Positions 10,354-41,000 of a DNA stretch of 64,000 nt are shown in pieces. The notes under the pieces were generated by a model. The model was not told the origin of the DNA. It did no database searches and saw only the letters and a program-made list of their open reading frames with translations. The stretch's first letter is position 1; the number at the start of each line of letters is the position of its first letter. Source of the DNA: Trichosphaerium sp. ATCC 40318. Lineage: Eukaryota; Protista; Tubulinea. The DNA lies in NCBI GenBank assembly GCA_038496445.1, contig JALMLS010000076.1, positions 62,001-126,000 of the forward strand. Direction: 5' to 3'. A program made the position numbers and the translations under genes.

Positions 10354-13160
10354 TCAGAGCTTAGTCTGTTCTAACTTATCATATTCTAGCATAAAATTAT
10401 CCTTTCTACACTTCTCCCATGTGTTTACATCCCAGTACCAGTACGACCCGCGCTCGTATGTAGCAGTCTTTACAATTGGTTCTGTTCCAGGTAATCGCTG
10501 AAACCACACTTGAAGGTCCTTATGATACCGCCAATCTCTAGCATACCTAAAAAACAGAGTTAGTTTCTAAACACATGAAACATAAAGTTGGCAGACATTG
10601 TGTTCGGCGTTAAAATGACGTACAGTTCATCTGCGCTTGCTACTTGCTGTGTATCGTGTGGCATGCTGTAAAAAATATAGAATAGGGTTTCTTCAGTGAA
10701 GAAACTCATTTTATCTGTTGGAGGAAGCAGAGCATCGGGTTGTATAAAATAGCAAGCTGGAATGTTAAATTCTGGTTCTCGCTTCAATGGTGCTTCAGCC
10801 CACGGAGATGCGAATGTAGCGTATAATACACTAATATAAATACTTAGATGAAACAGTAATAAACGGGCAATGAGTAAAGACATACTTTGGAGAACTGAGG
10901 TCAAGACCAAGTGTAGTTAAGTCTGTTCCAAGTGCAAGCATGTTTAGGTCTCTATCCGTCATTTTTAATACTTTTAGGAGGCCCAACAAGCTGTAAGGGT
11001 CGTGTTGGACATAATTATCATATGGTTCACCAATTGGCGTTTGATTACTGAAAAGAGACTAAAGAAAACGTGTAAGCTCATTGAGGTACCGAAATTTTTT
11101 GTTGCAAATAAAAGAAATGGTGGTAACCTTTCTGGGACTTGTGGACACTGATTGTCCCATAGAATCATTACGTTGGCGCTTGACATTATATTCGTAGTTG
11201 CCAGATGTCCGCAGTGAGCCCTGATTTTGACCTAAACGAATAAATAAAGAAATTTTAACAAGAAAAACACTCCAAAACCCAGGCTGATTGTGGTCGACGT
11301 ACCTGACATAAGCTTACTTGGGGACATCATAAACGATGCGCTGTTTTGAAATTGGCCGGCCTAAATGATCAGATCGAGTTTAAAATGGGAAAAAACGTAC
11401 CATCGCATTATTCACGGAGTTATCTTGAGGAGCGCCTGGTTTACCACCAAGGGCTGGGAATTCTTGTTCATATCGCCGATCGCCTACAGTTACGTTGGAA
11501 AAAAATAAAAAACCGTTATTTAATCGCTAGACGTCAAAATATCACCCAAAAAACGTGAAAATAAAGGTTTTGCGAATAATTTGTGCGGTTTAGGTGAATA
11601 AAGGCCTTACCTGCTTGTTGACCTCCATTTGCCTCCCGAGAGTTTGACATTAAACTCTGGGAGTAAGATTGACTGCCTGACTGGTGATTTGTAGAATTAA
11701 ATCCATCGAACGATGAACTTAAACCAAGGTGACTAAGTCATAAAAATCAGTTACAAAATGACTAATTTTGGGTTTACCCCTTAGAGCTCGTCTGCCGAGA
11801 TCCAGATGTGGTTAAGCTGTGCGATTGAACCGGCGATTGAGGTGGGATTAGACCCATTCCCTGTCGTCCAGGCTAATTAACGTCAAAAATAACGCTAAAC
11901 TGTAAAACGAAAAAGGGATGACTGGGACTTGAACCCAGATTAACACGTCCCGAACGTGTGGTGCTGCCAATTACACTATCATCCCTAGTGCTTTAGCACG
12001 TGCACGGAGGGGCATGCGCAAAAAAACCCTAACAACACCAAACGCCATTGCGTATCACTGAAATTTGTTTTTCTGTCAAAAAAAAGTTATTAATTCGCAC
12101 CATTTCGCGATGTTGCACTTGGGTATTTTGCATTGACATTGGTATTTGTCCGCCCAAACCACGAGTCATCTGTTGTTGTGACAAAGACAATGATGATCGT
12201 ATTTGCTGAGAAGGTTGTGATGCTAGAAGAACGTTAGTGCCAAACTTAAAACTTACAATTAATGCACATACGTTGGTGTGGTTGCCGTAGTTGATCAACA
12301 CCCATATGTGGCATGTTCGATACGCTATTATTAACAGAATGGTGCGTAGCGGCTATACGACGGGAGGTCGAATTTAAAAGAGTGTGTTGTGGCGCAGGCT
12401 GCATCGTGTGTTGAGAGGATATGCTGTGTTGCGATTGTGTGGATGTTTGTCTGTGGTTTTGAAGGCCAGGTAGGTAGCTGTTTCGTATATCTTGACCAAC
12501 TTTAAAGGTATTAGAGAAGGAAAAATTTAAAACAAATTCAAATAGTAATTTTTCACATTTTAGGAGTTTTAAAACAACTGTGTCGTGAGGATGTGACTGT
12601 GTCACCATCGCCCATAACTAGTGGTAAATAAAATATGTGCAAATGAGAGCGAGGTTTCATCTCATAAGCGTGGGACAATGTCCTTTTTGTTCAAATAGTG
12701 ATGGAGGGAATTATCTGATGCAAAGGGCGCACGCATAGAAGGCGGTGTCATTTTGCGTGATTGAACTGGTGAATAAGGGGCTTGAGGCGATATTGTATCG
12801 AGGCTAGTACCATAATAATGTGTTGATGGGTCTACAGCGCTACCAGGAGGACCGGCGTTCATACCAGGAGGATACATACCTGCTTTACCCTGTACATTTC
12901 GGTTAAATGCGTAACACTTCATTATTGCCATGAGTGGTTCTGGCGTGTACAAATCAAGCCCTTTTGTGAGCTTTGGTGGTTATTTGCACTCTTAAAAGCG
13001 ACAACGCCGAAATTGTGCTAAAATGATGTACCTTCTTATCTCGAGAGTAGTAGTAATCTTTAGGGTCAAAATGTTGATCTTGGTTAGGATCTATGACATT
13101 GTTTTTGAAGTAATCCAATTTTTGTTTACTCCGCGGCTGCATTGATCCTTTTTCGCTCAT
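10354..13160 (-). CDS. CNOT2: CCR4-NOT complex subunit 2
   Basis: C-terminal NOT box: LALGTDLTTLGLDL..LYATFASPW..EETLFYIFYSMPHD..DWRYHKDLQVWF..YERGSY. Low-complexity Q/S/P-rich N-terminus. Confidence 0.92.
11914..11985 (-). tRNA. tRNA-Pro(CGG), atypical body, inside a CNOT2 intron
   Basis: Cloverleaf GGGATGA-TA-GTGT-AATTGGCA-GCAC-C-ACACG-TTCGGGA-CGTGT-TAAT-CTGGG-TTCAAGT-CCCAG-TCATCCC-T. All stems pair, A and B boxes are present, and a T5 run follows. Confidence 0.9.
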
Positions 13161-31739: not shown

Positions 31740-34700
31740 ATGGCACAAGTCACTTCGTTTGTAATTTGTGTATTCTTTGCGTTGTTCGCTAATAGCAAAG
31801 TGTCCGCTTTTACTTCTGACAACTACGTACAGCATGAAGTGCTTGTATCAAACGTGTACACTATTCACTGGACTGTAAATGAAACGGCAGGGGAGATTAG
31901 ATTGGCCTTGGAAGCACAAACCACCGGTTATGTTGCATTTGGTATTGGTGAGCCTACGAGTGGAGGGTACGCAACTTGCATCGGTGAAACAAAAAACTTT
32001 CTTATGTTCTAACAATAGATTTGGTGGCGCAGATATAGTTTGGGGCTACGTAGATGGTACGTACAAGTTTTCTCAAAATAAAGCAACGTACTAAAATCTT
32101 TATTAGATGACACAGGCTACATGGAAGTGAATGATATGTATACCGAGTCAGTACGTCAGAACCACTTTAAAACAAAAACAGACAAAAGCAGTTTTCAGAT
32201 TTTCTAAATACCGTGGTTAGGCAGATATCGCGCCTAAAAGAGATACTTGCCAACACTGGAAGCTTATTAGTGCCGAACAATCAAATGGTGCAACAATCAT
32301 GGAATTAAGCAGAAAACTGGATACAGGAGACCAAAATGTGCGTGTATAGACACAAAGCTTTCGTTCAGTTTAAAAAAATATCACTGAAGTTTCTGACCCT
32401 TCGCACAGGATCGCATCATTCAGCCAGGTTTGCATAGAATAGTTGGAGCGTGGGGATCCAGCGACAATTTCGCTATAAACAACCTTAACACCAGTACGTT
32501 CTTTGTTTTGAAATGAAAGTTCTAATGTCGTTGTAGCGGATTCTCCTATAACTTTCTACGGCGACAATCCACTTACTCCAGCAGTTGGGGCTCTTAAAAC
32601 AAGGATTTTGATCAGTGGTACTTATTGTAATAACAATAATTTCTAAGTCCATTCAGATCTACCTATTGCTGCTGATACAACTGCCCACAACTGCCATTTA
32701 CTTTCCCTTAGCGGCAACACAGCATACCATGCTATAATGGTACAATTGGTTATTCAAATATTGTCTTATAGTCCTAGTTTGAACCTATCATAGATAAAGA
32801 AGATTATTTACGTAGTATAAAGCTCTTTGATTGTACACAAGATTCACAAGATGACTCGAACTATGGTGCATCATGCAACTCAGTAGAAGTACGTATAATA
32901 TATTAATTTATAACTCTCCTTGTACTTACGGTTTGTAGGCTCGCCAAAATTGTTCGATCATATGGAGTTGGGGCAAAGGAAGCCCAGAATTTAGACTACC
33001 AGAAAATGTCGGTGCGTTACAACCAGATGCGATATTAGTACACTTGTATGACCTTGCTGTAGGATTTCCCATTGGCGAATCAGGTGCTAGGAAACTAGTT
33101 GTTCGTGTTACTTATGACAATCCAACACAACAAGCAGGTATTAAGGATAAGTACGTAATTGTTATTTTTTAAATAGTATTGTATTCTAATTCTTGCTGCA
33201 GATCAGGTGTTGCAATGTTTTTGACAACGACACTCAGGCCAATAATCGCTGGACTACTTAGCATAGGTGATCCTTTTATGAACCTTCCTTCAATACCAGC
33301 TGGAAGCTCAAGGGTAATACCATCTCTAATCTGCATTGTTCTAACTTCTTGTAGTATCATGTTGAAACGACGTGTCCTTCTGAATGTACAAATTCTGCTA
33401 AATGGAATCAAAACAATATTACCGTTTTCGGCAGTTTCTTTCAAATGCGCAACTATGGTATTAGTAACTTGTAAACCAATAAGCTATGCTAACAGCATGT
33501 AAAGGTAAACGTGTATGGACAACATTGACACGTGATGGTTCTGTTATTGAGGGAACAAATCGTGTAGATTTCTATGATGACGGTACGTTCACTAACCATA
33601 GCTTCTTAGTTGGCATACTCATCTTTGTAGAATACCACCAGTGGGCAAATGTAAACTATGTATTGAAAAGTGGTGATAGGCTTAACCTTCACTGTGAATA
33701 CGATACATCTACTGCTAGTTCATTGGTGTCATTTGGTGACGAGGGCACACAAGAGTCTTGTAGAGGATCTCTCATGTACTACCCCGCTATTGATGTAAAG
33801 TAAGCCTTGGTCAAAAAATACAACGCGCTAACGTTACCTAAGATACTGTGGTTTGGCATCAGGACAAGACACTATATGCGGTACTACTGCGCCTGAGGAT
33901 ATTCTTGCTGAACCAGCAACGCCTCCAACAGGAAATACAGGTACAGGGTTATAATTAAACTGCAGTAAGCACAGCTAACAATCATGTAGATGCACCTGAT
34001 TCTGGGATAGTTCAATTCGTGCAAACGCCAACTAGCTGTCCAGTTGGAACAATACCAGAAGCACCATCTACAACTGTTCCTCCAACAACTCAACCGACAC
34101 CTGAACCAACAACAAGTCAACCAACAATCCAACCAACGGACCAACCTTCAGGCCAAGCAACAGCCCAACCAACGACAAGCCAACCAACAACAAGCCAACC
34201 AACAACAACAACAAGCCAACCAACAACGCCACCAAGCACAGTTGCCCCATATAGCACCAATACACCTACAGCTTCTCCAACAAGTCAAATCCCATCTTTC
34301 AGTCCAACGGCAATAGCATCACCATCGCGATCAATTATTGTGACTAGTCCACCTATTAGACTTTTCCCAGTTGGAAATGATCAAACCATGCGTCTGTTGC
34401 TGACTATTGGAGTGACATACTATCCTCTGAAGGTTCACGATCTTGATTTAATTTGTGAGGTTGTTGTAGCTGCAATCAAGTTTACAGGAGAAATAGATTG
34501 CTACAATAACCGTGAACAATTAAAACGTTCAATTGAAGCAACTGGAGGTGTTTTGGTTACAATGCAAGGTGATAACGCAGTCGATAAAGGAATGAGTTTA
34601 ATCAAAGACTTTCAACTTCAACAACAAGTCGATGTAGCTATTAGAACTGTTGTTGGTGTCAACCTGGTACTGCTATTTCACGTTTTTTTATTTGAGCTAA

Positions 34701-35163
34701 CATGGTAGTAGTTACATGTTGCAGAAGTTGAAGACGAAACTGCAACAGGAGTACCATCAAAGAGTGTTTCACTAGGCATGTTATTTTTTTTGAGTTTCGA
34801 ACCTTGCATAGAATGCTGACTTGCTTTTCAGTGTACTTGATTGGTATCCCCCTATTGGCTGCCATTGTTATACTACTTGTTGTAAATGTAGTATTGTTCC
34901 GTAAGGCAGCCAAGAGGGTCAAAAAAGACAACAGAGCGAGAGATAATGGTGAATTTGAAATGACATCTCCAAGAAGACATTTAAAAAGAAAGAAGGATAA
35001 TGATTTCAAGTTGACTGGTGTTACATTACTAGAAAAAGCACCCGACGGTACTTTATCGCCACGAGGTGGTGACAGTGTCTTGTCCCCAAGAGACGATATT
35101 GATGAGGAAAATATACCTCTCAGCGCATCTGGATATGGTCCTGAAGATGACATAATGTTGTAA
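31740..35163 (+). CDS. DOMON + copper type II monooxygenase-like (DBH/MOXD1-like) membrane protein, probably catalytically dead
   Basis: Signal peptide, DOMON (TTGYVAFGIGE..GADIVWG), monooxygenase-fold motifs (LPENVGFPIG, YDNP..DKSGV, GDRLNLHCEYDT, MYYP), PTTSQ stalk, TM LIGIPLLAAIVILLVVNVVLF. Confidence 0.82.
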
Positions 35164-35283
35164 AAATCACCAAACTGAGAAGATGTAAAAACAAAACAAA
35201 AATATAACAAGTACACTATTTTTTTATCCGAGACTTGAATAAATGTTCTTATTGGTACAATGGTAATATTTGTAAGTATGTTC

Positions 35284-37918
35284 CTACCTACATAACGAGT
35301 ACATTTTTTCATTACATTCGATCCACCCGCGCATCACAAGCTCTTGAGCAATCTCACATACAAAATCTACAAAGTAAGCTTAAAACATATATGGTTTTTT
35401 ATTTGTATTCTCACCTTCTTCAATATCTGCAGCGTATGGCCTTGCATATGATAGTACCTAATTTTGTATTAGAATGCATTATATAGAGTTTTGTTGTACT
35501 GCATACGTTCTGTACAACCTCTTTTTCAGATACACAAGCCGGGTGCTTCTTTTTTACAACATCGTAAAATGCTACTTCAACAACATGTTTATAAAAAAGC
35601 ATAGCCTCTTCCCATCTACTAGGAGGCTTTATAAAATGTATTAGTAATGCATAAGCTATGCAAAAGAAAACACATTGCAAGTGATAAACTTGGGTGTACC
35701 TTTGCAATGACTGGCGGAGGACGTCTTGTTGTTTTTCTATTAAGGTTGTTCCTTCGCATGTGACTTCGGTAGTAGTTGTTGACACTGAAAATTGTTTCTT
35801 TAGTGAATTGGTACTCATCAGGAGATCCATTAGGAGAGGTGTATGTAAGGATATTCGTTTCAGGTCGTGTGAGAGTCTATAATGAAGAGTTAAATGAGCA
35901 GAGGTTTTTAAAAACAGTATAAATAAGTACCCAAAGCTTTTTGTCGAGATGTCCTTTAAAGTGGGAATTGAAAGCTTCCAAGAACCTCACCTAATGTTGA
36001 TGAGATGTTATTTATTAATATAAGATAAATTAGTCATTACCACAGATTCACGGAGTCCACATTCGTAGAAGTTTATCTTTGCTTGAATAATTTTTATTGC
36101 ACAAATCTCTCGAAGAGTTTTAATATGTGGCGGCAACATAGCACCAACAGACTCAATCTCTGGCATGCCAACGCTATCTCTATTATTAAAGAGATTCAAA
36201 ACACATAACTAGAAGTATTGTCAGTTAAACCAAATCGAGGTAATAATGTCATAAGAAAATACCTGCAGCATTGTTCCTTTCAATTCATACTCTCTTTCGT
36301 ATTCATTATTGTGATCAAATATCACATTACCTATTAACATTAATATCAATAAGTACAAAATAATAGCTTACCATGAGAGTAAGCACCTTGCCAGACTAGT
36401 TTTCTTCCTGGATGCTATTGTAACATTTATTTAAAAAAAACATTTAAAAAAAATATGTTTACCTTCTCCTTATAAAATTGAGTGTACAGCGTCATACATT
36501 TTGTTACTTCAGGTGGAGCCATTTCTAAGCTTGGGAGAGAACCAAATCTATCAAATATTGGTTGCCAAACATTTGGGGATAGCACACGGCATTTGAATTC
36601 AACTAAATAACACATTAATGATACATAGCTCCAAACCAAAAAAAACATACTGTTTGATGGATTAATCTTTTCAAAAGCTTCATCAAGTTTACTACTCTCG
36701 CGTAAATCTTCAATCAATTGATAAGGCTGTGCTAGAACATTTCCAAACACGTTACCATACTCACGCTGTAATACAGTTAGCTATGTATCAGGATAGCATT
36801 ACTCTTGAACTTACCTGTAAGTATCTTAACATTATGAACTGACGATCGTTTGGATCAGTTGGGATGGGTATATAACTAGAATATCCGAGTAAATACAATT
36901 GATTTATGTGGAATTGATGTCGGTTAATTTTTGACGTACCCACGCAGACTAAGTGTACGGTAGATGTACATAAAATCCTTGAAAAAAAGAAACTTGTCTT
37001 TTATGAAACGTGTCACTAATACCATCTTATGTATAGCGTCTTTACACATACTCTTCATATCGTAGTCTTCATCAAGGTAGTGCGGTTTACAGCAATCTTA
37101 TCAATTAAAATTATTCAACTTGTTGTGACTGAAACCCGCAAACAAGCCCTACATGCTTGGGCTGTTGGCTATGTATCTGGGCTCCGAAAACGTTACGTAC
37201 ACTTGAACCAATAAGTGAGCCACATCCATCCATTAGGGTCGTAATGACGAAACCATTTTTTGAAACACTAATCACGTGTTAGTTTATTTTTTTCACTTTA
37301 GTTTTTAAACTTACGTCATTTACTACCTTTCTCACTTCCCAATTGCCATGAAAGACTTCATGAGTGCCCTTTGCAAAATGGGCAAATACCTAGTGATATT
37401 TTCGTTAGTCTTAGCGATTGTGATAAGGACAAAACCTGGAAAAAGTTGTGGTAGCGCAATTTAGCCTCGCTTGTAAAACAGGAGTACTGGAGCATCTCGT
37501 CTATGAAACTAGCAAATAAATCCTTGAATTGAGTCATACCGGACTGTATCTACATGGACGTTATAATTGGGATACAAGAAAGGGCCTACTGTGCGTTACC
37601 TTTAGTAGAAACACGTATCGACAATTATCATCTCTTAAACCGAACCAATATTCTACACAATGTTCAATTTCGCGTTTGATAAGGTGAGCGTTATCTTTAG
37701 TCACGTCTACAACGGCCAGTAAAAATTATGAATGTTTGACAGGTTAACGGTTTACGTAGTGGATATAGAGCGTGTCGCCATCTTTTACACACTCGAGAGC
37801 ATTGGTGGTACGTATAGATTGGTAAATCAACAAATACGTGATGTAATAAAATTTCGGTTGGTAGCCATCCAATAGACGCAGTTCTACCCGAATCCGCCAT
37901 CAACGATCGCTTGTTCAT
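35284..37918 (-). CDS. F-box / cullin C-terminal-domain fusion protein with internal SOCS/BC-box-like motif
   Basis: F-box LPTEILLHHVFVDL..CSRVCKRWR. Cullin motifs FIKDKFLF, IEDLRESSKLDEAF, FKCRVLSPNVW, FYKEKHPGRKLVW, FSVNNYY. Nedd8-type winged helix VEVAFYDVVKKK..LVMRGWIE..YSL. Confidence 0.8.
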
Positions 37919-38026
37919 TCAGTGTAATTATTGAGATGGTTCTTGTACAACGGTCGCTGATAAATTCACTTTTTGGCGTTAAGGAATTACAGTTGCTAAG
38001 TTACATATTTCAAAAAAAACATAACG

Positions 38027-41000
38027 ATGGGAGTTCCAGGGCTATTTTTATGGCTCATAAAACGCTACCCAGCTATGGTGCATCTTATTAACCACGAAGA
38101 AAAAGCAAAGGACACCGACGATAAATCTAGTGAGGAAGAGAAGAAAGGAGTGCCAAAAGAGGACTATTCATGCGACAACCTGTATCTTGATATGAACGGC
38201 GTTATTCATAACGCCTCTCATCCTGCAGAAGACGAGCCAGTACAGTATTTACTTATAAACGTCCCTAAAATGAGGTAGGAAGCGCTAAATGTAAAACGAA
38301 CCAAAGAACTTATTCTGTGGAAACTTGACCACATTGTAGAAGCTACCAGGTACACACTAGTAAATTACTAGTCGTTATTTTGTGTAGCGGTTGCCCAACT
38401 TTATTTTTTCAAAATTAAAACTATCGTTAGGCCACAAAAATTAGTATTTATGGCCCTGGATGGTGTAGCACCGCGCGCAAAAATTAACCAGCAACGTTCC
38501 AGGCGTTTTGTTTCAGCTAAAGGTACGAATTAACGTCAAACTCGAAAAAATTTCACATTTTTTGTTATTGCTCATTGTTATGGTTGCCTTTAATGCTAAT
38601 AATCGTAAATTTAGATAGAAAAGAGGGTGATGACAGTTTTGATACCAACGCTATTACCCCAGGCACAGAAGTAAGTGACACGTCATATCTAGATTTTTTT
38701 TTTCCGATTTTTTTCTCAGTACCTAATTTGTAGTTTATGAACGATGTTGCTCACTGGATACGTGAATACATGGAAACAAGAGTTACTGAACACCCTTTAT
38801 GGAAAGACGTAAGACCGTCAAGTGCTTGTAATGTGGGCTAATATGATTATTTTAGCTTACAGTTATCTTCAGTGACACTGCTGTGCCTTCTGAGGGAGAG
38901 CACAAAATAATGGTACACATCACAACCATTATTTTAATTACTTACTTCTTGTAGGACTACATCCGCTTCGTCCGTAAACAACCAAACTATGATCCTAAAA
39001 CTCGTCACGCCATATACGGTAAAGACGCTGACTTGTTCTTCCTTGCTCTTTCATCGCACGAGTTAAACTTTAGTGTAAGGCTTTCTGATGTACTACAATT
39101 ATGTAATCTAATGAGTGCACTGTAGATTATCAGAGAGGAGGCTCAGTCGTCTATTCGTCACATTGTTCCTCCTGCTCCAAAGAAGGTTGTGCCCACTAAG
39201 ACTTTGCATGTGAGCCACTTGCCGACCACTGCACAGGAGGAAGGCTTAAAAACGATATTCTCCCAAGCAGGAAAGGTTGTTGAACTCAGACTAGTTCAGA
39301 AAGAGTCCAAGTATGCTTTCATTGAATACGAAACTGTAGAGGTTGCTACAAAGGCCTATGAAATGTTTAAGGGAGAGCTTGTTATTGATGACGAGCATAT
39401 TAAGATACAATACGCACGTGGCGGTATGTTCGTTGAAAATTCTTTTTGTTCCAATTATTGGTTGGCTAAACACAAGCTAGATAAGCCTAAACACGGTGAA
39501 AAAAAAGAACGAAGTAAGGATACTATTTATGTTGGTAACTTACCTTGGGCTATCAACGAAAGAGGTCTTGCTGATTTCTTTAAGGTTTGTAGCAAACTTA
39601 TTAAGCATGTGATCATAATTGATTTGCCCTTAGGATTGTGGACCTATTGCTGAAGTACGTATCATTACTGATAGGCACACTGGACGTTCTAAGGGGTACT
39701 TTGATAGCAATCAACGCAAGCTAAAATGATTGTAGGTACGGTTATGTACGATTTTCGAAAGAAGATTGTCTTGGTAAGGCTTTAGCATTGAATGGTAAAG
39801 AACTCAGTGGTCGTGCTCTTAAGGTTGACTTCAGCACGCAAAGGAGAACTGGTATAGCATAGAAATATTATGGATATCATGATGCTGATTGTTTTCCTTA
39901 GATACAGGCATCCAACGTGTTGATGAACAAAACTTGAAGATTGGACAATTCCTTTCTTTTATTGGCATTGTAGAAAACGGTGTCGCATACCATTATTTGG
40001 AAGTGCGTATACATAGTACCTGAGTGTTAACTATGATGATTAAAATTTTAATTAGACTGCCAATTGGGATCTCGAATTGGCTATAAATTTGTACTTTGAA
40101 AAACAGAGCAAGGGCGAAGATCCTTTGGCCGTCAAAGAAACCAAAGATGAGTCTGATAAAAAAGATAATAAAGAAGAGAAACTTGAGGCCAAAAAAGAGT
40201 CTGGGGAGAAGAAAACGGAGGATGATAAGTCTACTCCGAAAAAGAAAGAGAAGGATATTCACAACGTATATAACCATTTACTATGCCCTTGAACAGGTAC
40301 TTACCTGACTGTAGGTGTTAACAACTCATCAATTGCATCAAATAATGGGTATGAGGTACGTACAAAGTGGATACCTAGCTCATGTCATATTAATTTCAAG
40401 TTAAAGGTACTGGGTGTGTCATACATCAATTATACGCGAATATATGCAGTTTGAGATTGCCAAAGAATTTACGATTGCAAAAGAGCGCATGGAGAGACAA
40501 GCGGTTAGTTTTTTTTGTTGAACGTTCAATCATTTGACTTTTATGGTTTTAGGAGTATGATGGTGTACCAATAGAAAAAGAGGTATTAGCCAAATAATGG
40601 AAAACCACTTTTGTTTACTGATTTCTTTAGCTTACACCTTTTGAACTTGACCGTGTCATTGACGACTTTGTTTTTATTTTTATCCTCATTGGCAACGATT
40701 TCCTTCCAGGTTTGTTTGGCTACTCATATTTTAGCGTATAACTGTGGGCAATAGGGTTACCGTCACTCGATGACGTATACCATGGCACAATGGACTATGT
40801 GTGGATGACATACTTGCGTTGTCTACCTACTCTTGACGGTTATCTTACTGATAGAGTCAATGTACTAAAGCAATGTTGCTAACTGTTTTGCTTATTTGTT
40901 TGTTTTTAGCTTCACCCTAAGCGTATTGCTACCTACTTGAGGGCATTAGCAGAAAAAGAAACAAGTCAGATTTTGTATGTGCTTATTTGTATTATCTACT

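Follow-up and report, generated by a model that had tools for sequence, protein, structure and literature searches.

An atypical intron lies between F-box and cullin C-terminal coding sequences in one gene of the amoeba Trichosphaerium

The stretch of DNA analysed here, referred to as the window, comprises 64,000 nucleotides of Trichosphaerium sp. ATCC 40318 (GenBank assembly GCA_038496445.1, contig JALMLS010000076.1, positions 62,001 to 126,000 of the forward strand), and all coordinates given are positions within it. On its minus strand, from 37918 to 35284, lies a gene of 17 exons that opens with an ATG (37918-37916) and closes with the stop codon TAG (35286-35284). Read as one frame, this gene would specify a protein of 586 residues in which an F-box is followed by the C-terminal part of a cullin, an architecture that had been put forward in an original prediction made from the letters alone. 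The coding sequence for both parts is present on one spliced transcript, and the choice of acceptor at the intron between them would decide whether they are translated as a single chain.

The gene model was built by hand, linking open stretches through GT-AG introns, and was then checked against assembled RNA contigs from four public runs, labelled X1, X4, X5 and X6, that were placed on positions 34500-38500. Such contigs prove that an isoform is present, not that one is absent, and minor forms are dropped in assembly. Spliced transcript contigs identical to the window support 15 of the 16 introns, which are 41-73 nucleotides long, with a mean of 51. The confirmed introns of the 5' part are 37755-37707 (present in contigs of both X5 and X6), 37599-37550, 37435-37390 and 37314-37268, and those of the middle part are 36939-36876, 36814-36766, 36650-36603, 36462-36415, 36371-36331, 36262-36209 and 36040-35991; further confirmed introns are 35930-35877, which is implied by record arithmetic, and 35699-35627. 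RNA also set the 3' exons at 35626-35507, 35457-35415 and 35366-35284 (contig joints 35504/35454 and 35415/35366). A spliced contig of 1266 nucleotides from run X5, with a depth of ~16, starts in the 5' untranslated region (UTR) at 37942, crosses the F-box exons and ends at 36136, so that the 5' UTR is at least 24 nucleotides long, and the 3' end of a transcript contig lies at 35248, past the stop codon. The intron at 36603-36650 is the sole intron of the gene with a length divisible by three and no in-frame stop, and its retention would add 16 residues. At position 37481, the metatranscriptome run X4 has C where the window has G; this change is silent, because it falls at the third position of a Ser codon (TCC to TCG).

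The translation of exon 1 was matched by two Pfam F-box profiles above their cut-offs, PF12937 (F-box-like) with 31.5 bits against 24.3 and PF00646 (F-box) with 27.2 bits against 20.5. The match covers residues 19-50 (37864-37769), and the exon carries both LPTEIL, a start of the LPxEIL type, and RVCKRW, a second helix of the VCKRW type. Exon 1 encodes a true F-box, and the N-terminal F-box of the original prediction is borne out by both profiles.

To evaluate the cullin homology, a reference set was collected by scanning viral contigs with a back-translated AAIVRIMK pattern, which led to full-length cullin frames on contigs of giant-virus metagenome-assembled genomes (MAGs); one giant-virus cullin and one heterolobosean cullin were then used as queries, and 217 cullins were obtained. 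The viral genes are full-length and intron-free, and lie on the IMG/VR giant-virus MAG contigs L001 (4446-6485), L004 (2071-4164), L005 (2100-4430) and L003 (1383-4247). Between the L001 and L004 cullins the similarity is ~84 %, and each shares about 40 % identity with stramenopile CUL1. L005 has a very high AT content, and close relatives of its cullin are nearly absent from the protein collection (4 matches).

Scored against a profile of 47 diverse cullins, the spliced 586-residue model reached 71.9 bits (E 2e-24), and hhalign placed its residues 85-579 on columns 302-743 of the 753 columns of the diverse profile (Prob 98.5 %, E 1.7e-15). The narrower profile, of 118 CUL1-like sequences, gave 46.7 bits, and the best single cullin, which is of the CUL1 type, gave 49.9 bits; when the model was shuffled 500 times, the score was 3.0 bits at most. 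The hmmsearch domain for residues 192-400 scored 67.8 bits and extended to profile position 605 of 741. Although identity to cullins is only about 18 %, conserved columns were occupied along the whole alignment, with IKDKFLF on DKDlF, RVLSPNVW on VLTtG.WP, HPGRKLVW on ..RrL.W, LQLCVLNLFN on.QA.iLl.FN, FSVNNYY on F.vN..F and LVMRGWIEC on LI.ReYLER. The strand motifs RVLSPNVW, GRKLVW and LQLCVLNLFN are the best-preserved part, and the pattern of the hydrophobic core of the alpha/beta domain is well preserved, with posteriors of 7-9. In winged helix A, LDKKLWTLTRPETNIL (residues 441-456) matches the cullin helix L..L.SL...K..vL, and FSVNNYYRSHMRR matches F.vN..F. The homology to the four-helix bundle and alpha/beta region that had been proposed is therefore upheld by profile scores, alignment and shuffles, and the motifs on which it had been based (FIKDKFLF, RVLSPNVW, HPGRKLVW and QLCVLNLFN) all fall on the matching conserved columns.

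No counterpart was found to profile columns 1-300, which means that the protein lacks cullin repeats 1 and 2 and the greater part of repeat 3, and only ~120 residues separate the F-box from the cullin C-terminal domain. Together with the F-box profile match, this agrees with the earlier proposal that an F-box has replaced the adaptor-binding N-terminus. The downstream exons encode a true, very diverged cullin, whose colinearity with the family starts at the end of repeat 3 and extends as far as the last winged helix.

Single exon pieces were too short for Pfam, and exons 8 and 9 (101 residues) were the only pair that could be read as one frame. On this read-through piece, PF00888 (Cullin) scored 12.3 bits (E 0.072), below its cut-off of 33.2, with the match at positions 445-518 of 620, which is where it is expected to fall in the profile. 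The exon 2-5 pieces gave no Pfam match, and exon 15 alone gave none to Cullin_Nedd8. Nothing relevant was returned by phmmer searches of the PDB with exon pieces, and the ESM Atlas gave no usable match to the 101-residue piece. That piece was also without a match among 1.84 billion representative proteins, its own protein included, so the protein is absent from that library.

The alignment of the full model extends upstream of the junction intron, back to residue 85, and posteriors of 8-9 are reached in two places, at residues 90-109 (KIQSGMTQFKDLFASFIDEM) and at residues 140-157 (VFHGNWEVRKVVNDCFKK), the latter on F..d.lF..AlkdAF. When residues 55-175 were shuffled and the rest of the model was kept, the posterior sum of the real sequence was reached in 0 of 60 shuffles with the narrow profile (greedy alignment) and in 0 of 80 with the diverse profile (default threshold); in 75 of the latter 80, the alignment ended at residue 193. 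The reach of the alignment to residue 85 and the failure of all 140 shuffles argue that both halves descend from one cullin reading frame. A structural landmark lies at the junction itself. In a PDB search with the L001 cullin, the CUL1 C-terminal construct 1ldk_B starts ~8 residues before the L001 helix AEQLSTFCDPILKK, and the counterpart of this helix in the fused model, WLTYWFK/YCCK (the slash marks the exon 5/6 join), straddles that join. A product begun at Met189, the first methionine of the downstream frame, would be without the helix, which argues that the fused frame is an evolved coding structure. The parts of the gene are listed in Table 1.

Table 1. Parts of the F-box/cullin gene and the evidence for each
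Feature	Position	Strand	Evidence
Exon 1: start codon and F-box	37756..37918	-	Pfam; intron 37755-37707 in X5, X6
Exons 2-5, residues 55-175: F-box end, linker and probable cullin repeat 3 remnant (residues ~85-160, including WEVRKVVNDCFKKWF)	37706-37600, 37549-37436, 37389-37315, 37267-37201	-	Three internal introns RNA-confirmed
Junction intron	37097..37200	-	Donor GTACGT at 37200; observed versus in-frame acceptor
Exon 6 in the fused frame, residues 176-227	36940..37096	-	Starts at 37155 in the observed transcript
Core cullin homology, residues 192-400, exons 6-12: rest of four-helix bundle, alpha/beta domain, start of winged helix A	36119..37049	-	hmmsearch; introns RNA-confirmed
Insertion of ~39-42 residues (401-439) in winged helix A	35952..36118	-	hhalign gap, HMMER domain split
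Remainder of winged helix A, residues 440-493	35736..35951	-	HMMER domain 2, hhalign
Winged helix B, residues 506-586	35287..35626	-	Lys530 at 35554-35552; alignment posterior 4-8

The exon joins near 37060-37200 had been called uncertain in the original prediction, and a break in the reading frame was indeed found there. In X5, the splice removes an intron of 45 nucleotides (37200-37156; joint 37201/37155, acceptor at 37157-37156), and in this form the F-box frame ends after 188 codons at a TGA (37117-37115). A second RNA contig, from X4 (151 nucleotides, 37147-37267), retains the junction intron while the upstream intron is spliced, and the retained-intron form meets a stop (TAA) after 177 codons. 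Downstream, the cullin frame runs without a stop through 411 codons in 12 exons, all of them correctly spliced, and is closed just upstream by TGA TAA (37103-37098); its first ATG, that of Met189, is at 37058-37056, and 398 residues follow from there. The 586-residue frame requires that the donor at 37200 be joined to the AG at 37098-37097, with removal of 104 nucleotides (37200-37097). By arithmetic there is a second productive route, in which the 45-nucleotide intron is followed by a 3-nucleotide exon, CAT (37155-37153), and by a 56-nucleotide intron with the donor GTAGGG, and which adds one Ser. The junction peptide diagnostic of the fusion is YCCKPHYLDEDYDMK, whereas the short forms end in ...WFKCT or ...RVSVTTS.

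With a leave-one-out matrix, the acceptors of confirmed introns scored from -0.8 to 7.2, the observed proximal acceptor -1.9 and the unobserved distal acceptor +1.6. The last 22 nucleotides of the 104-nucleotide intron have a GC fraction of 0.14, which is typical of introns. Three other accounts of the junction were tried and rejected. An origin of its GC-rich part from a repeat or mobile element was not sustained, no second copy being present in the window. A second intron of 23 nucleotides (37119-37097) would be far under the 41-nucleotide minimum seen in this gene and is contradicted by the X5 contig. Ribosomal frameshifting is excluded because the two frames do not overlap, and stop-codon read-through was rejected as well, the upstream frame having several further stops.

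The claim that a BC/SOCS-like box lies inside the protein fared less well. The sequence TLREICAIKI (residues 401-410, 36118-36089) fits the strict pattern [ST]LxxxCxxx[ILV], which occurs once in the protein and in 1 of 118 cullins, and which arose in 564 of 20000 shuffles of the protein (2.8 %). It stands at the start of the insertion of residues 401-439, which has no counterpart in canonical cullins and appears as a 42-column gap in hhalign; the HMMER domains end at residue 400 and restart at residue 440. The Pfam SOCS_box profile matched neither exon 12 nor, at E values up to 10, a spliced segment of 48 residues; phmmer found no match in the PDB with the same segment, and no LPxP cullin box follows the BC-like sequence. 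The prediction of a BC/SOCS box is thus reduced to a pattern match with a chance expectation of 2.8 %, without support from Pfam or the PDB. We also considered that the motif might be the conserved helix of winged helix A, which is ruled out since the diverse profile puts that helix at residues 441-456. About 33 residues from TLREICAIKI onwards may somewhat resemble the SOCS2 box without gaps, a likeness that is a lead only.

The gene has close neighbours on both sides. The ATG of a divergent gene for an XRN-type 5'-3' exonuclease is 108 bp from that of the F-box gene (37918-38027), and 24 of these 108 intergenic bases are 5' UTR in the transcript contig of the F-box gene. A convergent plus-strand gene, for a protein with a mucin-like stalk, a membrane span and a cytoplasmic tail, ends at 35163, and the 3' ends of the convergent genes are within about 85 bp of each other (35163 and the transcript contig end at 35248). 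The window has a single match to Rfam, a tRNA gene on the minus strand (11914-11985; 59.5 bits to the tRNA family).

We favour the reading that a minor or regulated splice form yields the fused protein, to which we give an even chance, and that the fused frame would be an evolved coding structure, because cullin homology crosses the junction and 411 open codons lie downstream. It is further favoured by the distal acceptor outscoring the proximal one and by the single spliced contig that covers both halves. A number of results weigh against it. The sole crossing contig, from X5, takes the proximal acceptor, and the X4 contig keeps the intron; neither the in-frame join 37201/37096 nor the form with the 3-nucleotide exon was seen in the two low-depth runs that cover the spot, and no mature mRNA with one continuous F-box-to-cullin frame occurs among their contigs. 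Of the single transcript and polypeptide originally proposed, then, the transcript stands, one spliced contig (37942 to 36136) spanning both parts, but its frame breaks at the TGA. At 104 nucleotides, the intron greatly exceeds the lengths of the other 15, and the GC fraction of its first 82 nucleotides, 0.50, is higher than in any confirmed intron (0.12-0.44) or any exon (0.32-0.47). Residues 55-175, when scored alone against the cullin profiles, were not significant, so that the proposed end of the cullin repeats is sustained by the colinear alignment and the failure of the shuffles but not by the segment on its own, and HMMER disagrees with hhalign over residues 96-113, which it matches to helix 1 of the four-helix bundle. 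Whichever placement holds, cullin-like sequence is predicted to be present upstream of the frame break, the detail of the placement being uncertain. The last 81 residues (506-586), likewise scored alone, were not significant; the Lys that had been assigned to the neddylation-equivalent site is found as Lys530 of FYDVVK, aligned with the K of IVRIMK (the NEDD8 acceptor) at a posterior of 7-8, which gives this part of the assignment moderate support, with none from the segment by itself. No orthologue was detected, the exon 8-9 piece being unmatched in metagenome contigs and exon 12 in viral contigs. Finally, it is from family knowledge that the F-box would bind Skp1 and that the alpha/beta domain and winged helices would hold a RING protein of the Rbx1 type.

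The same junction could be explained by decay of the gene. A once-working fusion would have suffered a recent change at the junction that brought a frame-breaking acceptor into use, leaving a short F-box protein as the only product and the cullin half as an untranslated relic. The premature stop in both RNA runs that cover the junction is as this explanation expects, as are the atypical length, composition and acceptor of the junction intron and the extreme divergence of the cullin half, where IVRIMK is degraded to FYDVVK. However, the 411 codons without a stop and the 12 pairs of splice sites downstream, intact and correctly used, mean that any disabling must be very recent, the hydrophobic core of the alpha/beta domain keeps its pattern, and contigs attest to the isoforms that are there and do not exclude others; we consider decay rather unlikely. 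The locus could instead make two proteins, the F-box protein of 177 or 188 residues and a cullin C-terminal-domain protein of 398 residues begun at Met189, by means of an internal promoter or reinitiation. The frames are separate in the observed mRNA, the ATG is 56 nucleotides past the upstream stop, and a contig from X1 covers the cullin half only and ends at 37061, 3 nucleotides before the ATG at 37058, although at a depth of ~9 this end may be a plain drop in coverage. The genome is also very compact (108 bp between divergent ATGs), and cullin C-terminal domains fold alone with Rbx1 in PDB constructs of 366-382 residues. Two separate proteins would nevertheless leave cullin homology upstream of the break and both halves joined in one spliced contig, and a start at Met189 would remove the first helix of the four-helix bundle; nor do the frames overlap in a way that would permit a frameshift. 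This arrangement appears improbable.

Less probable again, and in our estimate very improbable, is a constitutive single-chain scaffold with a working BC/SOCS box that would bind Skp1, Elongin B/C and Rbx1 at once. The strict pattern does occur, once, in a lineage-specific insertion outside the conserved cullin core, but its frequency in shuffles, the lack of SOCS_box and PDB matches and of a cullin box, and the absence of a continuous frame from the RNA all argue in the other direction.

The favoured reading, of a fused protein from a minor or regulated splice form, suggests the following scheme. The gene would be lineage-specific, the product of domain shuffling in a fast-shuffling F-box family; in it, an F-box has taken the place of repeats 1 and 2 and most of repeat 3 in a cullin of the CUL1 type. 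The junction would act as a splicing gate or, alternatively, represent a first lesion. The 586-residue fusion would arise only through the distal acceptor at 37097 or the two-step route, and with the proximal acceptor or intron retention, translation would end after the F-box half (188 or 177 residues, respectively). That splice choice at this intron switches the locus between an F-box-only protein and a 586-residue protein holding Skp1 as well as Rbx1 and NEDD8 is a tentative extension, whose likelihood we put well short of even. Since a long repeat stalk is missing, the fusion could not place a substrate receptor opposite the RING protein as a Skp1-cullin-F-box (SCF) ligase does. By analogy, its most likely role would be that of an F-box protein with a cullin C-terminal domain as a cargo domain, which would deliver to normal SCF complexes either the RING module or factors with affinity for cullin C-terminal domains; alternatively, it might serve as a sink for Skp1, Rbx1 and NEDD8. 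The self-assembling scaffold and the decoy suggested in the original prediction are likewise conjecture.

In cullin-RING ligases, the adaptor, the receptor and the scaffold are normally distinct chains. The original prediction regarded this architecture as one not known to have been described, and neither full-text literature searches nor a cullin-diversity survey yielded an account of an F-box-cullin chain. If the reading is true, the 586-residue chain would represent a component of cullin-RING ligases, short-circuited or bridging in nature, that is undescribed in any organism. A naturally occurring chain with both an F-box and a cullin C-terminal domain would make it possible to ask what part of the rigid cullin stalk is required, and would reveal how pools of Skp1 and Rbx1 can be wired or titrated; the odd junction intron offers a place to ask whether new fusions start as minor splice forms.

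Like the CUL1-type cullins (human CUL1; PDB 1LDJ, 1LDK and 1U6G), the amoeba protein keeps the colinear order of parts that leads from the end of repeat 3 to winged helix B, and a Lys in it aligns with the NEDD8 site. Unlike them, it is without repeats 1 and 2 and keeps a remnant only of repeat 3, so that the Skp1-binding surface of CUL1 is absent; it also differs from them in the F-box at its N-terminus, the insertion of ~40 residues in winged helix A, and FYDVVK in place of IVRIMK. Cullin C-terminal-domain constructs in the PDB (1ldk_B, 3rtr_A, 4p5o_A and 3dpl_C), which in 366-382 residues fold with Rbx1, likewise do without the adaptor-binding repeats, but they are laboratory-made and carry no F-box. 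With SOCS-box and BC-box proteins, only the ten-residue pattern is shared, and its context in the amoeba is a winged-helix insertion. APC2, CUL7 and CUL9/PARC, which have other N-termini, show that a cullin homology domain can pair with a RING protein in a non-canonical setting. CUL7 also works with Skp1 and an F-box protein, but in all these proteins the F-box is on a separate polypeptide. A CUL7-Skp1-F-box combination is listed in Table 1 of PMC2785787. Arabidopsis 'small cullin-like proteins' are mentioned in the same source (PMC2785787); these are unfused fragments that also lack the adaptor-binding repeats, whereas the amoeba protein would carry an F-box in their place.

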